Sequence record: NC_015251.1
Direction: 5' to 3' (one strand)
Length of the DNA stretch: 64,000 nt
Shown: one piece after another, positions 12,471 to 54,598 of the stretch
Layout of the letters: each line of letters begins with the position of its first letter
Numbering within the stretch: position 1 is the first letter of the stretch
The notes under the pieces: generated by a model
Databases searched by the model: none
The model's input: only the letters and a program-made list of their open reading frames with translations
Told to the model about the DNA's origin: nothing
Made by a program: the position numbers and the translations under genes

Positions 12471-13391
12471 TTACCCCACAATGATCGCATCAGGACCAGA
12501 TAATGAAAGAAGTTCTTCTCTAAGTTTTTCGATTTCTTCTTTAGCTTCTTGAATTAAACGAACCCCGTCAACGGTTACGCCTCCCGGTAATTGCATACCC
12601 TGATGTTTAGCCAATATACTACCCCATATGTCTTTTACGAATGCAGTAGACATATCTTTAATCCATCGGTTGTCGTATACCTTTTGATCTGGGAAATCAT
12701 TTCTAGCTTCGCCTACAACCCATTCAGGAAGTTTGTTATATGGATTAGCCCATTTTTGTTCTAGGGTTGCATTATCACCAGAACCAATCGGGGTATATGA
12801 CCCAAAATTATTATATGCAAATTCATCAAGATCTACGAAGTTTTGAATATATACTTCAATAACAAGAACGTCACCTTTTTTGAAATTTTTACCAGATATC
12901 TGAAGAATACCCGCCTTGGTATCAAAATCATATTCTGGTAATGGGTTTAGCTGATCTTGTAACAGCTTCTGATATGAACTAAATTGTGCAAAATAACCAA
13001 CACTACCAATATTACCGAATGGGCTTGGTCCGTGATAACAAGAACCACCTGCCCCACTAATGCTCATAATAAATCCGGTGAACCAGTTAAGAGGAACACC
13101 ACCACCTAACAGGGTTGTATTTCCAACTTGAGATCTAAGGATTTTTGTCACGGCGAATATAGGATATTCACTCAAATCTATATATCCCGTTAGAGCTTGT
13201 TCCTCGGTCATTACGATGGTAATGAAGGCTCTATTAAGTGCATCATGATGATAATCTTTATACAGTTCTAGGGCACGGCCTATACTGTCATAAATTTGAG
13301 TTTCCGTTACTTCTACGTTGATTACAGGGGCACCCAACCGGCGCAGAATATTATCTTTCAATTCTCTTGGATTGTTACAGGTATTAAACAT
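12471..13391 (-). CDS. gp13: neck protein gp13
   Basis: NPRELKDNILRRLGAPVINVEVT, YDNRWIKD and KHQGMQLPGGVTVDG. Confidence 0.96.
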   Translation of the reverse strand: MFNTCNNPRELKDNILRRLGAPVINVEVTETQIYDSIGRALELYKDYHHDALNRAFITIVMTEEQALTGYIDLSEYPIFAVTKILRSQVGNTTLLGGGVPLNWFTGFIMSISGAGGSCYHGPSPFGNIGSVGYFAQFSSYQKLLQDQLNPLPEYDFDTKAGILQISGKNFKKGDVLVIEVYIQNFVDLDEFAYNNFGSYTPIGSGDNATLEQKWANPYNKLPEWVVGEARNDFPDQKVYDNRWIKDMSTAFVKDIWGSILAKHQGMQLPGGVTVDGVRLIQEAKEEIEKLREELLSLSGPDAIIVG

Positions 13392-45956: not shown

Positions 45957-46041
45957 GCTTGTGTGGTGGAACTGGTATACACATTAGACTTAAAATCTAA
46001 CGCCTTCGGGATTGGGGGTTCGAATCCCCCCACAAGCACCA
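45957..46041 (+). tRNA. tRNA-Leu(UAA)
   Basis: Cloverleaf GCTTGTG/CACAAGC, loop CT-TAA-AA, long variable arm, CCA. Confidence 0.95.
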
Positions 46042-49708: not shown

Positions 49709-50104
49709 ATGACACGTAATGAGAAATATAAATTAGGAGTTTCTAAATTTATCAAGAAAGGTTTAACATTGATACAATCTAGTATCATGTATAAACAGAC
49801 AGATCCTGAATGGGAAGAAAAAGACGAAATTTATTGCTACCTAAATAAGGATGATAAAGAGATTTACATTATTAAACGTCTTGGGTCGTGTTGTGGTCCT
49901 TGGCTTAGTGTAAGTTGTCGAATTCTTCGTAGAAAAGGTTATGCGGAATTCAATTTTGATGATACAATAGAAGCTGATTATATGGGTGGTAAACGAACTG
50001 CATATCGTGTGATGTTTACATCCGAACCGGAAGTAGTGTATAATGAAAACTTCCCGTTCTACAAATCGAATCTAATTCAGATTTATGAAAAACTAACCAA
50101 ATAA
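49709..50104 (+). CDS. hypothetical protein
   Basis: RBS GGGAG; 131 aa. Confidence 0.75.
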   Translation: MTRNEKYKLGVSKFIKKGLTLIQSSIMYKQTDPEWEEKDEIYCYLNKDDKEIYIIKRLGSCCGPWLSVSCRILRRKGYAEFNFDDTIEADYMGGKRTAYRVMFTSEPEVVYNENFPFYKSNLIQIYEKLTK

Positions 50105-50138
50105 AAAGTTTACACATCATTGAATATTGTGATATGAT
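50104..50138 (+). promoter_or_regulatory. early-type promoter for tRNA array
   Basis: AAAAAGTTTACA-N15-TGaTATGAT. Confidence 0.75.
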
Positions 50139-50202
50139 GGTTATATCGATGAGTCATCGAACAAACAGTTTTGTGATGTACATCTAGAATGTTTAAACTT
50201 GT

Positions 50203-50279
50203 GCGCTGTTAGCTCAGTTGGATAGAGCAACGTTCTTCTAAAGCGTGGGTCGCTGGTTCGAATCCAGCACGGCGCACCA
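50203..50279 (+). tRNA. tRNA-Arg(UCU)
   Basis: GCGCTGT/ACGGCGC, loop CT-TCT-AA, CCA. Confidence 0.95.
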
Positions 50280-50285
50280 AAATTC

Positions 50286-50369
50286 GGGGATGTGGTGAAA
50301 TTGGCAGACACACCAGATTTAGGTTCTGGCGCTTATAGCGTGACGGTTCGAGTCCGTCCATCCCCACCA
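50286..50369 (+). tRNA. tRNA-Leu(UAG)
   Basis: GGGGATG/CATCCCC, loop TT-TAG-GT, CCA. Confidence 0.95.
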
Positions 50370-50385
50370 GATTTAAGGGATAACT

Positions 50386-50454
50386 ATGAAAATCCTCAAA
50401 ATGAAGAAATACCCTTACACATGTAGATTGTGTGGTTGGGATTATGAAAATTGA
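50386..50454 (+). CDS. Cys-containing micro-ORF A (22 aa)
   Basis: MKILKMKKYPYTCRLCGWDYEN*; RBS AAGGGA; paralogue at 51913. Confidence 0.6.
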   Translation: MKILKMKKYPYTCRLCGWDYEN

Positions 50455-50477
50455 AGTTTGTGAATAAAAAGCTTTAT

Positions 50478-50553
50478 GCGGGTGTAGCTCAGTTGGTAGA
50501 GCTTCTGATTTCCAATCAGAATGTCGCGTGTTCGAGTCACGTTACCCGCTCCA
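50478..50553 (+). tRNA. tRNA-Gly(UCC)
   Basis: GCGGGTG/TACCCGC, loop TT-TCC-AA, CCA. Confidence 0.95.
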
Positions 50554-50555
50554 AA

Positions 50556-50630
50556 TTTGTATGTAACTCAATTGGTTAGAGCACGGGACACAAATCCCGT
50601 AGGATGTTGGTTCGAGTCCAATCATACAAA
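50556..50630 (+). pseudogene. tRNA-like element with 6-nt anticodon loop and no encoded CCA
   Basis: TTTGTATG/CATACAAA stem, normal D and T arms, CGGGA-CACAAA-TCCCG. Confidence 0.7.
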
Positions 50631-50641
50631 AATTTCAAGAT

Positions 50642-50719
50642 GGCCCCCATAGCTCAGTTGGTTAGAGCGTCCGACTCATAATCGGGTGGTCACTGGTTCG
50701 AGTCCAGTTGGGGCCACCA
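50642..50719 (+). tRNA. tRNA-Ile2(CAU, lysidine type)
   Basis: GGCCCC(C)A/TGGGGCC acceptor and CT-CAT-AA loop like enterobacterial ileX; one extra C is probably an error. Confidence 0.85.
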
Positions 50720-50740
50720 AATTTTGATGAGAACTATATT

Positions 50741-50935
50741 ATGTCTGGTATAAAATCCATAATTGAAAATTGGTCAGTTGGTGATGGTATAATCCACTGG
50801 AAGAATGGACGTCATAGTTTAGTAGTCTTTGGGTTTGCTCCAAATGGAGAACCTGCATTTAAGTTTAAAGGTAAGAATAAACTTACGTCAGTAAGACAGA
50901 TTGAAAAATCAATAGTGATGGCACATATTCTATAG
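50741..50935 (+). CDS. hypothetical protein
   Basis: MSGIKSIIENWSVGDG...; 64 aa. Confidence 0.65.
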   Translation: MSGIKSIIENWSVGDGIIHWKNGRHSLVVFGFAPNGEPAFKFKGKNKLTSVRQIEKSIVMAHIL

Positions 50936-51177
50936 TCGTAAGCTCTCACGAATTTAATGGTCGTTGACCTTACGATAACAATAAAGCGGGTATGAGTCCC
51001 CTAGCTTTTAAAATTATAAAAGGGATGTTGATGCGCGTATGTAGCCGGGTTATAATGACCGAGATTCATGAAGGGTAAAAGACTACCCTAAATATTAGTG
51101 TAAGAAGAGTATTTTGGGGTTATCGCAATTAAATTGTTATAATTTTTCGGAATACCAGTTACACTAATAAATATTAT

Positions 51178-51253
51178 TGCGAGTTGGAGAAGTGGTCATC
51201 TCGACAGGCTCATTACCTGTAGGTCGGTTGTTCGAATCAACCACTCGCAACCA
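51178..51253 (+). tRNA. tRNA-Met(CAU), fMet-like
   Basis: TGCGAGT/ACTCGCA-A-CCA, loop CT-CAT-TA. Confidence 0.9.
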
Positions 51254-51259
51254 AATTAA

Positions 51260-51335
51260 GGGCGTGTAGTTCCAGCGGTAGAACGATGGACTGTTAATCC
51301 ATGTGTCGGGGGTTCGAATCCCTCCACGCCCGCCA
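51260..51335 (+). tRNA. tRNA-Asn(GUU)
   Basis: GGGCGTG/CACGCCC, loop CT-GTT-AA, CCA. Confidence 0.95.
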
Positions 51336-51337
51336 AT

Positions 51338-51456
51338 TTTGTGTATAGTTTAATCGGTTAGAACATGGTGTGGATCGACTCCACCTTTGCTGAATAGCGA
51401 AATAAATAACTGGCTTTAGTCGCCGGATGGTGCGGGTTCGAATCCCGTTACACAAA
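51338..51456 (+). ncRNA. 119-nt tRNA-like RNA with expanded multi-hairpin anticodon region
   Basis: TTTGTGTA/TACACAAA acceptor, canonical D arm and GCGGG-TTCGAAT-CCCGT T arm; TGGTG/CGCCG stem encloses an insert of about 50 nt. Confidence 0.7.
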
Positions 51457-51464
51457 AAAGTTTA

Positions 51465-51558
51465 GGAAGGTCAACCCGACGGTAGGCGACGGGAGCGGTC
51501 TTGAAAACCGCCGAGGCGTAACAGCGCCTTGTGAGTTCGATCCTCACATCTTCCGCCA
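51465..51558 (+). tRNA. tRNA-Ser(UGA)
   Basis: GGAAGGT/ATCTTCC, loop CT-TGA-AA, long variable arm, GCCA. Confidence 0.92.
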
Positions 51559-51567
51559 AGTTTTAAT

Positions 51568-51643
51568 GCATCGTTAGCTCAGCAGGTAGAGCATGGGACT
51601 TTTAATCTCAGGGTCGCTGGTTCGAATCCAGCACGATGTACCA
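51568..51643 (+). tRNA. tRNA-Lys(UUU)
   Basis: GCATCGT/ACGATGT, loop CT-TTT-AA, CCA. Confidence 0.95.
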
Positions 51644-51649
51644 GTTTTA

Positions 51650-51733
51650 GGATGCATAGGCAAATGGTTAAGCCAGCGGTCTGTAAAACCGTAGCCTTCG
51701 GGCTTCTTGGTTCGAATCCAAGTGTATCCACCA
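51650..51733 (+). tRNA. tRNA-Tyr(GUA)
   Basis: GGATGCA/TGTATCC, loop CT-GTA-AA, CCA. Confidence 0.95.
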
Positions 51734-51739
51734 AATAAT

Positions 51740-51814
51740 AGGTCTATGGTGTAGTGGTAACATGCCGGATTCCAAATCCGTGCGTCTGGGGTTCAAGTCC
51801 TCATGGGCCTGCCA
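51740..51814 (+). tRNA. tRNA-Trp(CCA)
   Basis: AGGTCTA/TGGGCCT, loop TT-CCA-AA, GCCA. Confidence 0.9.
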
Positions 51815-51819
51815 AGTTT

Positions 51820-51896
51820 GGGGGATTAGCTCAGTTGGAATGAGCGACTGGTTTGCAACCAGTAGGTCATCGGTTCGACCCCGATATCCTCCACCA
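51820..51896 (+). tRNA. tRNA-Ala(UGC)
   Basis: GGGGGAT/ATCCTCC with G3:U70, loop TT-TGC-AA, CCA. Confidence 0.95.
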
Positions 51897-51912
51897 ATTT
51901 TAATGAGCTTTT

Positions 51913-52008
51913 ATGAAAATAATCAAGGTAAGAAAGTATCCATATACATGCAACGTTTGTGGTAACGACTATGACGACTGTTATTGTGGATTCTTGTTAA
52001 GTGTGTAA
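51913..52008 (+). CDS. Cys-rich micro-ORF B (31 aa)
   Basis: MKIIKVRKYPYTCNVCGNDYDDCYCGFLLSV*; CxxC...CxC. Confidence 0.6.
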   Translation: MKIIKVRKYPYTCNVCGNDYDDCYCGFLLSV

Positions 52009-52014
52009 ATAGAT

Positions 52015-52313
52015 TATAATTAGGTTATGGGCTCTAGATTCCTAGTCAGTTTCGCACCCTATAATCGCAACGCTGGTTCGAATGTAGATGTTTTGACCGA
52101 CTATAAACTACAGCCAGCAACGTATAAAAATCAGGATAAGTCCTGTAAAATCCTCGGTTGTTTCTAAGTCCCTCTCTGGTTCGTGAGTAATCAGGCGATA
52201 CTAATTATATAAACGGGGTAAATAATTTAAGCGAGATTAGGGTTGCAAACCGAAATCGTAAGTCGTCTTGTACATACCCACTCAAAGAAGGTATGAGTTT
52301 ACAAGGTGCGCCA
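52015..52313 (+). ncRNA. candidate multi-stem ncRNA with interrupted T-arm motif, ending GCCA
   Basis: 9-bp long-range stem 52015-23/52201-09 and several hairpins; no credible ORF. Confidence 0.5.
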
Positions 52314-52339
52314 GTTTTCAGTCTGGTTAAAACTGTTAT

Positions 52340-52417
52340 CCGTGTGTAGGCTAGGCAGGTCAAGTCGTCTGTTTTGGGACCAGAAGATCGAAGGTTCGAA
52401 TCCTTCCACACGGACCA
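52340..52417 (+). tRNA. tRNA-Pro(UGG)
   Basis: CCGTGTG/CACACGG, loop TT-TGG-GA, CCA. Confidence 0.93.
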
Positions 52418-52423
52418 ATTTTT

Positions 52424-52715
52424 ATGAGGAAAAATGATATGTGGCGATCTGTTGAAGTTACTGTTAAAAAGTTTGAAGAATCTCATCTCCGAAAATTGAC
52501 AAAATCGCGTATTAAGGCATTCAAAGCATCCTTGTCTCCGCGAAGTTGGTATGCGATTTACAGATGTTTGTTGTGAATCACGATGCGAAAGTATTGAAAA
52601 AGATCGCCAAACAGAAGCATATGAAATTTATATTCATAATATGGCTAATATCAACGCCATTTATGCCGAGAAATCAACAGACCTTTCCAATGGTTGCACC
52701 AACTGGTCAAATTAG
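52424..52715 (+). CDS. hypothetical protein (apparently frameshifted near 52540)
   Basis: Two abutting protein-like frames (MWRSVEVTVKKFEE... and GMRFTDVCCESRCES...). Confidence 0.35.
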
Positions 52716-52988
52716 CACAAAGAACGGGATAACGGCGTATATCCCCGGAAGAAGCCAGCCATAGAGAATCTGGATATCCTATAAAGTGCTTGTAATTTAT
52801 AGGCGGGATTGGTAGTATAAAGACGATATGGTAACTACCCATTGACTAGCAGTGTGAAACTAGAGGTTACTGTCCTTAACCAAACTACGAACAGATGGAC
52901 AAAATGGTTGATTTCCCTTCCTCTTAGTGATAGCGTATCAACCAAATTAGGATATAATCACAATCTACGGACCCTGATTATATTCCGA
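52716..52988 (+). ncRNA. candidate ornate ncRNA (string of about 7 hairpins)
   Basis: GGGATA/TATCCC, CCTATAAA/TTTATAGG, GGTAGT/ACTACC, TGTCC/GGACA, TGGTTGAT/ATCAACCA, GGATATAATCA/TGATTATATTCC. Confidence 0.5.
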
Positions 52989-52990
52989 CT

Positions 52991-53066
52991 GCCGAATTAG
53001 CTCATCTGGTAGAGCACAGCCTTTGTAACGCTGGGGTGGTCCGTTCGAGTCGGACATTCGGCACCA
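52991..53066 (+). tRNA. tRNA-Thr(UGU)
   Basis: GCCGAAT/ATTCGGC, loop TT-TGT-AA, CCA. Confidence 0.95.
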
Positions 53067-53078
53067 AATTAATTAAAT

Positions 53079-53154
53079 AGTGGATTAGCTCAGTAGGTAG
53101 AGCACTCGACCGATAATCGAGAGCGCATTGGTTCAACCCCAATATCCACTACCA
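53079..53154 (+). tRNA. tRNA-Ile(GAU)
   Basis: AGTGGAT/ATCCACT, loop CC-GAT-AA, CCA. Confidence 0.93.
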
Positions 53155-53160
53155 ATTCTA

Positions 53161-53248
53161 GGAGAAGTGGATGAGCGGCTTAAATCGCTCCCCTGCTAAG
53201 GGAGTAAACCGGAAGGTTTCGAGAGTTCGAATCTCTCCTTCTCCGCCA
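53161..53248 (+). tRNA. tRNA-Ser(GCU)
   Basis: GGAGAAG/CTTCTCC, loop CT-GCT-AA, long variable arm, GCCA. Confidence 0.95.
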
Positions 53249-53255
53249 AATATTT

Positions 53256-53331
53256 GAGGATGTAGTATAGTGGTCAATATCCCTGCCTGTCACGTAGGAG
53301 ATCGCGGGTTCGAGTCCCGTCATCCTCGCCA
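53256..53331 (+). tRNA. tRNA-Asp(GUC)
   Basis: GAGGATG/CATCCTC, loop CT-GTC-AC, GCCA. Confidence 0.95.
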
Positions 53332-53336
53332 ATTTG

Positions 53337-53736
53337 GATTCCCGTCAATAGTCCGGTCTATGGGAATCAACGCTTTAAGTAGCCCACCGGTATTTGTAAA
53401 GAGTGACTGTATCTAGTGGAAACATTAGACAAGGCTTAGATTCCCTTTCTCAGGGCCTAAGCGTAAAGTAACGAGCAAGACCTTCTTGTAGGCTTAACCC
53501 ATTGGGGTGTTTGAGGTTTACATGTGTGGGCTCGGATAGCCAATGCTATTAAGTCTGGTGATGGTGCGACCGGATCAATTTTTGGAACCACAATAAACAA
53601 GTATGTGCCTTGGTGGTTCGACCTGCTTTGCAGCCGTACATGAAGCTAAAGTTTTTGGATTTCTAAATAAGAGTATGGGACTCTGGAAATCGACACATTA
53701 ATTTGTATCCCGTTAAACTAAAAACTGTGAGGTTGT
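53337..53736 (+). ncRNA. candidate ornate ncRNA of about 400 nt with nested domains
   Basis: GATTCCC/GGGAATC; AGCCCAC/GTGGGCT enclosing a GAAA-tetraloop hairpin and GCTTAG/CTAAGC; GAACCAC/GTGGTTC; GCAGCC/GGTTGT enclosing AGTTTTTGG/CTAAAAACT. Confidence 0.55.
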
Positions 53737-53738
53737 AT

Positions 53739-54063
53739 ATGTCGCCGCTAAACGCAAGCCGTTAGGACGTAAAAGTAAAAAATAGTATTTTCATAAATGG
53801 TTATCCTAATGATGGTGTTCCTGTATTATGTAACGTGTTTTATCAATATGAAACTAATGGAGGTCCGTTAGACATAATGATAGAAACCCCTGTATAATTC
53901 CGGATATATTATTGATTGGTATTCTTTCATAAAAGATGCATTAAACATTGGATGGAAGAAAGAGACTATAATTAAGAAAATAAAGTATGCATTCGATGAT
54001 GTTGAAATACAAAATTCGGATGATATATTAAAAAGAGTTATCCAGTATATAGAAAGCCTATAA
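53739..54063 (+). CDS. hypothetical protein (frameshifted)
   Basis: RBS GAGGT + ATG; protein-like frames ending IDWYSFIKDALNIGWKKE...QYIESL*. Confidence 0.4.
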
Positions 54064-54074
54064 AGGAAAATGGT

Positions 54075-54323
54075 ATGGGTAAAACTGTTCGCCGTAAAAA
54101 TGAAAAATATCTCCACGAATTGTACGATAGTATTGATGTGACCCGCGATTTGGGAGATTATTACAATAAAAGTCCGGATAGTGGTGTTAAGGATCGATAT
54201 AATGTATTGTCCCGACAGCGGGATCGTAAGCTGAAGCATGACATTCTACATGGTGACCATGATGTTTTTGTTGATGATGATTACGAAAAGAAACGTTCAA
54301 ATTCAGGTTATCAATACAGTTAA
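54075..54323 (+). CDS. hypothetical protein
   Basis: RBS AAGGA; 82 aa. Confidence 0.7.
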   Translation: MGKTVRRKNEKYLHELYDSIDVTRDLGDYYNKSPDSGVKDRYNVLSRQRDRKLKHDILHGDHDVFVDDDYEKKRSNSGYQYS

Positions 54324-54371
54324 GGATATTCTATGTACAGAGAAGAAAACGAAGGCTGGTTTTAAGTGTAA

Positions 54372-54598
54372 GGGGTAATTAATATACCCCAGCGGCGTCA
54401 AACTATGTAGTCAATGGTGTGGTGACACCATACATAGTCACTAGACGAAAAGAGGGCGTATAACCTCGCATACGCTTCCCGTTATTAGAGGGTAGTGTGA
54501 CCTACTACAACACGAAAGGTTGTCTCTCAACTTCACCTAGAGGGGCGCATTACAACGGGGACTCTATCTTGCTTTGACTGGCTTGATATAGTCCCCGT
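54372..54598 (+). ncRNA. candidate structured RNA
   Basis: GGGGTA/TACCCC; ACTATGTA/TACATAGT enclosing TGGTGT/ACACCA; GCGTAT/ATACGC; GAAA-capped hairpin; ACGGGGACT/AGTCCCCGT. Confidence 0.45.

Follow-up and report, generated by a model that had tools for sequence, protein, structure and literature searches.

The end of the tRNA array in Aeromonas phage 65

The stretch analysed here, 64,000 nucleotides (nt) of record NC_015251.1 and called the window below, was identified by blastn as Aeromonas phage 65 (GU459069; Straboviridae, Emmerichvirinae, Ishigurovirus). Window positions are GU459069 positions minus 62000. ARAGORN finds 18 transfer RNA (tRNA) genes in the window, all on the + strand, one alone at 45957-46041 and the other 17 spanning 50203-53331. 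Neighbouring genes in the array are mostly just 5-12 nt apart. The last of the 18 is tRNA-Asp(GUC) at 53256-53331 (+; 65.1 bits with the Rfam tRNA model), which encodes its CCA end and is followed by the A/U-rich spacer ATTTGG. We were interested in the interval that follows, 53333-53760, and in a structured RNA of about 145 nt within it, referred to here as block B. The GenBank record of phage 65 has no annotation at all from tRNA-Asp to 65p136 (window position 54075); in the near-identical phage 65.2, two small hypothetical proteins are annotated between tRNA-Asp and the 65p136 equivalent.

A sequence-only reading of the window had proposed that 53337-53736, directly after tRNA-Asp, encodes one ornate RNA of about 400 nt, held together by nested long-range helices and possibly representing a new class comparable to the GOLLD and ROOL RNAs. 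The position is correct, and all of the complementary segments that were named can be read directly in the sequence:

AGCCCAC 53381-87 / GTGGGCT 53526-32: long-range enclosing helix
CTAGTG-GAAA-CATTAG 53414-29: hairpin
GCTTAG 53434-39 / CTAAGC 53457-62: helix, identical to P1 of block B
GAACCAC 53585-91 / GTGGTTC 53613-19: helix, in block C
GCAGCC 53630-35 / GGTTGT 53731-36: long-range helix
AGTTTTTGG 53650-58 / CTAAAAACT 53718-26: helix
GATTTC 53658-63 / GAAATC 53686-91: helix, in block E
CTAAATA 53663-69: internal motif, in block E

The interval does not encode a transfer-messenger RNA, an RNase P RNA or an intron, and the earlier reading had likewise seen no core motifs of these: ARAGORN reports tRNAs only, and neither a search against Rfam at gathering thresholds nor a cmscan search of 49800-54300 at E≤10 returned a match in 53332-53760. 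Nor did ARAGORN or weak Rfam tRNA matches reveal a tRNA or tRNA pseudogene there. The only open reading frames (ORFs) that overlap the region, which had been described as ORF-free, are short, with up to 48 amino acids, and none of them is conserved.

Complementary segments of this kind are by themselves no more than expected by chance. The minimum free energy of the whole interval is -123 kcal/mol, compared with -114 ± 5.5 kcal/mol for shuffled sequences (z = -1.69), and six of 100 shuffles fold equally well. The individual blocks described below gave z values between -1.0 and +0.06 when folded separately. Because the thermodynamic signal is weak for the interval and for each block, folding energies were not used as evidence.

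Structure and distribution of block B

Block B is a genuine, previously unlisted structured non-coding RNA of about 145 nt. Its structure was derived with RNAalifold from a MAFFT alignment of 16 sequences, independently of the covariance model R1 used for the searches below, and has the following elements:

53431-53582 (core 53434-53575), + strand: block B, a covarying structured RNA of about 145 nt
53434-39 / 53457-62: P1, with a tetraloop-capped tip at 53443-46 / 53452-55
53472-76 / 53530-34: P2
53487-95 / 53514-22: P3, with a tip at 53497-500 / 53505-08
53535-40 / 53545-50: P4
53553-59 / 53569-75: P5, with the conserved loop GAUGGUGCG at 53560-68
GAUU past the 5' arm of P1, and CGUAAAGUAA at 53462-71: conserved single strands

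The consensus contains 31 pairs in six helices. Compensatory changes on both sides are seen in 16 of these pairs, and every helix has at least two. Pairing is maintained in 99.2% of the alignment cells, as opposed to 22-47% when the 3' partners are slid by one to three columns; the same controls contain only 0-3 pairs with double changes. P2, for instance, is CGAG/CUCG in some sequences and AGGG/CCCU in others, and the tip of P1 is capped by a GNRA-type loop (GUAA, AUAA) in one clade and by UUCG in the other. Several unpaired stretches are also kept, namely GAUU or GACU in P1, CGU(A/U)AAGUAA after P1, and the P5 loop AUGGUGCG. The 5' and 3' ends of block B do not pair with each other. G-U pairs that are invariant in all 16 sequences would be C-A on the opposite strand, which places the RNA on the + strand, like the tRNAs.

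Block B does not encode a protein. The phage 65 copy has at least two stop codons in each of the six frames, no frame stays open throughout the family, and 1-nt and 4-nt indels distinguish the clades. Two micro-ORFs were considered and rejected, the 39-amino-acid ORF annotated in phage 65.2 (53524-53643) and an ORF beginning MCLGG at 53603, both of which are split or truncated in relatives. CTAAATA and, in block A, GCTTTA were also considered as possible promoters or late promoters and rejected, since the spacings and -10 elements do not match and lack conservation.

The covarying structure bears on the helices proposed earlier. GCTTAG/CTAAGC is P1, and it is the only one on the list that is backed by covariation. 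The enclosing helix AGCCCAC/GTGGGCT overlaps and competes with the covarying P2 (CGAGC 53472-76 / GCUCG 53530-34) inside block B. Its AGCCCAC arm lies in block A, where the alignment shows it altered in ZPAH1 and Aswh_1, and block A does not exist outside the Emmerichvirinae genera; a counterpart of the helix is missing in the seven full-length homologues of block B outside Emmerichvirinae. In an environmental variant G53526 is changed, and a change at its proposed partner C53387 is not among the differences listed. The GAACCAC/GTGGTTC stem is invariant, so covariation cannot judge it, and those of block E are confined to one lineage. The 3' arm of GCAGCC/GGTTGT shares positions with GAGG (53729-32), the Shine-Dalgarno sequence of an ATG at 53739, and avDM6 has lost the 5' arm by deletion. 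The prediction of an unannotated structured RNA just past the tRNAs was thus borne out by block B, which covaries and has no conserved reading frame, but the predicted size of about 400 nt was not, the covarying unit being about 145 nt long; for the long-range pairings that would link the blocks, covariation is effectively lacking.

Model R1 was built from ten Emmerichvirinae copies of block B and scores 171 bits at the phage 65 locus. It also gave full-length matches of 70-88 bits in four phages that belong to Biquartavirus or stand close to it (44RR2.8t, AhFM11, AS4 and B614), in three Tulanevirus phages (phage 25, IME13 and Aes012), and in two contigs of environmental origin. At least four genera of T4-like Aeromonas phages thus have members with block B, namely Ishigurovirus, Ceceduovirus, Biquartavirus and Tulanevirus. 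Its surroundings vary. In AS4, AhFM11 and B614 it is the sole occupant of a 152-nt gap between tRNA-Thr and tRNA-Trp, beginning 7 nt past the CCA of tRNA-Thr and stopping a few nt short of tRNA-Trp. In 44RR2.8t and phage 25 an ORF of about 61 codons for a hydrophobic peptide lies between tRNA-Thr and block B (L019:6733-6917 and L022:920-1105, respectively). In phage 65 there is no tRNA on the 3' side.

Within the collections scanned (IMG/VR, GTDB and JGI), the family looks confined to Aeromonas T4-like phages. An exact-pattern scan of IMG/VR recovered known isolates and one new contig only. Seven pattern matches in GTDB genomes comprised just the hairpin itself and were dismissed as chance, and two of 18 pattern matches in JGI metagenomes were real. 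Three environmental contigs carry a full or partial block B, one of which retains the order tRNA-Thr, block B, tRNA-Trp. R1 did not find block B in the array of a T5-like Aeromonas phage, and a 16-bit match at window position 13066-13191 (- strand) was taken as noise. A description of block B was not found in the searchable literature, which does not exclude that one exists.

A mosaic of blocks around block B

Comparison by blastn with nine relatives (avDM6, CC2, P19, AS-yj, AS-szw, Assk, ZPAH1, Aswh_1 and AP1) shows that 53333-53760 is not one molecule but a mosaic of blocks that have been gained and lost independently. Block B is kept in all nine, at 87-93% identity. The other parts of the mosaic are:

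53333-53400, + strand: block A, hairpin A1 (GAUUCCC 53338-44 / GGGAAUC 53363-69) followed by the conserved motif ACGCUUUAAGUAGCC; fold z -0.68
53414-53429, + strand: linker hairpin CUAGUG-GAAA-CAUUAG, lineage-specific, at the place where relatives carry module M
53583-53650, + strand: block C, hairpin GAACCAC 53585-91 / GUGGUUC 53613-19 and a tail; fold z 0.04
53651-53714, + strand: block E, extended hairpin GAUUUC 53658-63 / GAAAUC 53686-91 with inner AGAGU/ACUCU; fold z 0.06
53715-53765, + strand: translation-initiation region with Shine-Dalgarno GAGG 53729-32, ATG 53739 and an 8-codon mini-ORF to TAG 53763-65
L004:1290-1461, L006:1282-1454, L009:1252-1418 (core L017:2010-2095): module M, in relatives

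Block A comes after tRNA-Asp in phage 65 and avDM6 but after tRNA-Thr in Ceceduovirus. ZPAH1 and Aswh_1 retain just the motif ACGCUUUAAGUAGCC, behind another hairpin. The alignment shows one compensatory change in hairpin A1 between genera, from C-G to U-A. Between A and B, Ceceduovirus and ZPAH1 carry module M, a conserved non-coding block of about 170 nt that phage 65 lacks. Probably, block A is what remains at the 5' end of a larger A+M unit, which CC2-like phages and ZPAH1 have kept whole and from which phage 65 has lost the M core. The Ceceduovirus counterpart of the linker hairpin reads CUAG-UGRAAG-CUAG. CC2 and Assk have a further insert of about 135 nt between M and B, which includes a partial duplicate of P1.

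On the other side of block B, phage 65 and Ceceduovirus have block C, which avDM6 and an avDM6-like environmental contig lack. In CC2, P19 and AP1, B and C are set apart by a complete tRNA-Trp gene. The deletion of block C is flanked by a direct repeat, TTTTTGGA (53578-85 and 53652-59): the environmental contig, from a public run, skips exactly 53578-53653 (74 nt) between the two copies, and also skips 52415-52708. Block E is restricted to the lineage of phage 65, 65.2 and avDM6 and is absent from all Ceceduovirus in the alignment. Given that the domains are parted by a tRNA gene or lost one by one, the interval is not a single ornate RNA. Blocks A, C and E are best described as lineage-specific structured spacers or remnants.

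The core of module M, about 95 nt, is 90-98% identical in the tRNA arrays of the T5-like Aeromonas phages AhSzw-1, AhP_Mru1 and Akh-2, where it is placed between tRNA-Glu and tRNA-Ile. Module M has weaker matches in Klebsiella, Vibrio, Acinetobacter and Shewanella phages. This distribution suggests that RNA modules may be exchanged between unrelated phages. The M core also has a match in JS98-like coliphages (E = 0.05), but this falls in an unrelated intergenic spacer and was discarded.

A second conserved structured block of the array lies outside the interval originally proposed:

52711-52905, + strand: module X, a structured non-coding block of about 190 nt

Module X is 85-91% identical among relatives (blastn), and RNAalifold predicts 47 pairs, six of them with compensatory changes. 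A covariance model of module X, R2, scores 198-243 bits, in Emmerichvirinae only; no copy was found with it elsewhere. In relatives module X directly adjoins tRNA-Pro, and in phage 65 a 292-nt segment (52416-52707) intervenes. Two small ORFs, 65p134 and 65p135, lie on this segment. It is missing from avDM6, ZPAH1, Ceceduovirus and the avDM6-like environmental contig, in all of which X abuts tRNA-Pro, and by this comparison it looks like a recent insertion in phage 65. The GenBank ORF 65p135 (window 52564-52764) extends into module X.

The downstream gene on the + strand, 53739-54062, belongs to phrog_22967 (PHROG match, E = 3.6e-41). Its start region, 53715-53765, is nearly invariant between two genera, and the mini-ORF overlaps the phrog_22967 frame in another frame. 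The gene is broken in the phage 65 record by extra bases at about 53777 (in an A run) and about 53887 (in a C run). Both bases are missing in 65.2, avDM6, P19, AS-yj and two environmental contigs, and are probably sequencing errors. In relatives, protein-like conservation extends beyond the annotated starts by some 45 codons in the upstream direction, as far as about 53745, and this frame has no canonical start codon there; frameshifting or reinitiation may possibly operate here.

Some further features of the array deserve mention. All 17 standard tRNA genes encode CCA followed by an A/T-rich spacer (AATTT, ATTTT, AGTTT or similar), a regular punctuation that would be consistent with a common endonucleolytic processing signal. 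The gene not counted among them is an unannotated tRNA-like gene at 50556-50631 (+; Rfam tRNA 45.5 bits), in which the anticodon stem closes a 6-nt loop, CACAAA, so that ARAGORN names no anticodon. A comparable odd tRNA is found beside tRNA-Met in the T5-like Aeromonas phage AhSzw-1 (L017:844-917). Two gaps in the array have no annotated gene: 51897-52339 (+; 443 nt), whose avDM6 counterpart contains a degenerate tRNA-like call, and 51336-51464 (+), with a weak tRNA-like match at 51388-51455 (17 bits). Either gap may harbour decayed tRNAs or additional non-tRNA RNAs.

Relation to known RNAs and possible role

The closest parallel to block B is provided by the species 1 and 2 RNAs of phage T4 (rnaC and rnaD), which are transcribed from the tRNA region and classed as late; RNAC has been probed on Northern blots, and their function is unknown (PMC3014915, PMC9697503). 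In T4, rnaD (119 nt) and rnaC (139 nt) follow tRNA-Arg on the tRNA strand, with gaps of 1 and 6 nt. They resemble block B in being small non-coding RNAs of comparable size that share the strand of the tRNA genes and lie within a T4-type tRNA cluster or at its end. They differ in structure: a tRNA-like T arm, GGGUUCGAAUCCC, and a terminal stem are present in rnaC, whereas block B has neither, nor any GTTCGAATC-type arm. No homology between them was detected. With filters off, R1 scored 0 bits on rnaC and 1.6 bits on the rnaD/tRNA-Arg junction, and a blastn search with rnaC and rnaD retrieved 806 enterobacterial phage records but not a single Aeromonas phage. Since Rfam contains neither rnaC nor rnaD, its silence on block B is uninformative for RNAs of this kind. 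As far as can be judged by analogy, block B works like the T4 species RNAs but forms a separate family.

Other RNAs fit less well. GOLLD and ROOL reach several hundred nt (roughly 600-800), each conserved as a single unit. At the phage 65 locus the conserved unit measures about 145 nt and the 400-nt interval is a mosaic, and Rfam has no match to it at E≤10; the longer versions of the locus in ZPAH1, CC2 and Aswh_1 likewise gave no match to GOLLD, ROOL or any other large RNA. Proximity to tRNA genes is a feature that these structured, phage- or prophage-associated RNAs at times share with block B (PMC12286853). Our Rfam scan of 49800-54300 gave no match to RtT. The YrlA matches in that scan (18-22 bits, against a gathering threshold of 69) overlap or abut true tRNAs, and none is in 53332-53760. 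RtT-type RNAs (Escherichia coli tyrT) and YrlA are non-tRNA by-products or partners of tRNA transcription units; YrlA has a tRNA-like module, which block B lacks. The M core of AhSzw-1, Akh-2 and AhP_Mru1 is like block B in being a conserved non-tRNA block between tRNA genes, but it belongs to another sequence family and is absent from phage 65. Its occurrence in T5-like Aeromonas phages indicates that blocks of this kind are passed between unrelated phages infecting the same host genus.

Block B has the features of a small RNA of a phage tRNA cluster: it is on the tRNA strand, a few nt from tRNAs in AhFM11, AS4 and B614, non-coding, and of conserved secondary structure. Its arrangement mirrors that of rnaD and rnaC in T4, and we therefore take it for a small non-coding RNA gene like those two. 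In our view the interval is probably the tail of the phage 65 tRNA transcription unit, with block B as a discrete RNA of about 145 nt that is co-transcribed with the tRNAs, processed out and active in trans. Promoter-like sites are found at 50015-50044 and 50109-50138 (11/12 and 10/12 matches), ahead of the run of tRNA genes that starts at 50203, and the only terminator-like site on the + strand up to 54249 lies at 50486-50503, within a tRNA-Gly gene. Block B would thus be transcribed on the tRNA strand as part of a polycistronic array transcript. By analogy with T4 species 1 and 2, RNase P would cut the 5' end of the tRNA that adjoins its 3' side in most relatives, and the A/U-rich spacers after the encoded CCA would be attacked by RNase E or exonucleases. 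The released RNA would persist owing to its compact fold, and could act in trans through its single-stranded motifs, the AUGGUGCG loop and the CGUAAAGUAA linker. That the loops are conserved speaks for a specific partner and against a simple spacer role.

Several observations weigh against this interpretation. The compensatory changes in block B mostly separate two clades, so that each pair reflects few independent events; the covariation argument rests on its breadth (16 different pairs) and on the slid controls. Block B alone is thermodynamically weak (z = -1.0). In phage 65 no tRNA follows it, and the 3' end would need to be formed by other means; P5 followed by CAAUUUUU is present in phage 65 but is not conserved. 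The one hint of expression is weak: a wastewater RNA-seq run yielded contigs on 52707-52905 (module X) and 53361-53580 (blocks A and B, with three differences) and none on 53649-54400, some 750 nt of neighbouring coding sequence, but the run is flagged as probably DNA. Its depth is only 4-6, so the missing flanks could be due to chance. Finally, the loop sequence UGGUGCG is complementary to tRNA 3' ends (CGCACCA of tRNA-Arg, GCACCA of tRNA-Thr and tRNA-Leu), but in the window such complementarity is no more frequent than chance would give, and in phage 25 it is not kept for the tRNA-Thr next to block B. For the former reason we retain it as a speculation only.

Might block B and the other blocks simply be spacers acting in cis, which aid folding of the precursor, guide or insulate cleavage by RNase P and RNase E, or protect tRNA ends, with no function in trans? 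Every block is located between or right after tRNA genes on the tRNA strand, block B is within a few nt of tRNA-Thr and tRNA-Trp in three phages, and different structured blocks (X, A, M and B) occupy equivalent inter-tRNA sites. However, a simple spacer would not need some 20 invariant unpaired nt (AUGGUGCG and CGUAAAGUAA) across four genera. The sequence is kept whether its flanks are tRNA-Thr and tRNA-Trp, an ORF and tRNA-Trp (44RR2.8t, phage 25), or no 3' tRNA at all (phage 65), and most adjacent tRNAs of the array manage with 5-12 nt and no such element. We consider a pure spacer role unlikely. Less likely still, and to our mind rather improbable, is that A, M and B are domains of one RNA of about 400-460 nt, intact in Ceceduovirus and ZPAH1, whose M core has been deleted in phage 65 and avDM6. 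The A motif, M and B are indeed collinear in Ceceduovirus, ZPAH1 and Aswh_1 with no tRNA between them, ACGCUUUAAGUAGCC is retained upstream of M even where hairpin A1 has been replaced, and the deletion junction in phage 65 falls exactly at the start of M. Against this, Biquartavirus and Tulanevirus have block B on its own, T5-like Aeromonas phages have the M core with neither A nor B, CC2 and Assk carry about 135 extra nt between M and B, including the partial P1 copy, and no covarying pairing of A or M with B was found.

The single ornate RNA of about 400 nt at 53337-53736, a new class like GOLLD and ROOL, is largely refuted, and we regard it as very improbable. All of its complementary segments exist, conserved ORFs are lacking, and the locus is a phage tRNA region, but the fold is unexceptional (z = -1.69), the enclosing helix overlaps the covarying P2, the GGTTGT arm is part of a ribosome-binding site, a tRNA gene and deletions separate the blocks, and no large RNA matches at E≤10. 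It is hardly conceivable that the conserved element is not an RNA at all but a DNA element (a target of recombination or of a homing endonuclease, or a replication or packaging signal) or a micro-protein gene. Homing-endonuclease genes do adjoin the arrays of P19, Aes012 and IME13, and phage 65.2 has its annotated hypothetical protein of 39 amino acids at 53524-53643. Yet the substitutions preserve pairing, including G-U wobbles that are valid on one strand only; there are stops in all frames and indels that are not multiples of three; and the 65.2 ORF crosses the B/C junction and is split by tRNA-Trp or deleted in relatives.

A discrete, processed and trans-acting block B remains our preferred reading. 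A bolder extension of it, which we offer as a long shot, is that X, A/M and B make up a toolkit of trans-acting RNAs directed at the host tRNA or translation machinery, in which the AUGGUGCG loop of block B would capture ...GCACCA termini or the protein that binds them. If this were true, block B could be a decoy against host defences that target tRNAs, or a regulator of CCA-end metabolism, and would offer an initial clue to what the T4-type 'species' RNAs do, a puzzle now 50 years old.

Extra small stable RNAs, such as T4 species 1 and 2, have been recognised in phage tRNA clusters since the 1970s. Block B adds an unrelated family in the same niche, found in several genera and divergent enough for its structure to be defined, and its invariant unpaired motifs point to a specific partner. 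Our results suggest that the inter-tRNA 'spacers' of large phage arrays are often structured RNA genes, and structured blocks appear to be exchanged among phages of one host genus, including T4-like and T5-like phages. Such blocks currently have no annotation or are mislabelled as small hypothetical proteins, so that their recognition is useful for annotation, and they are tractable targets for deletion in Aeromonas phages.

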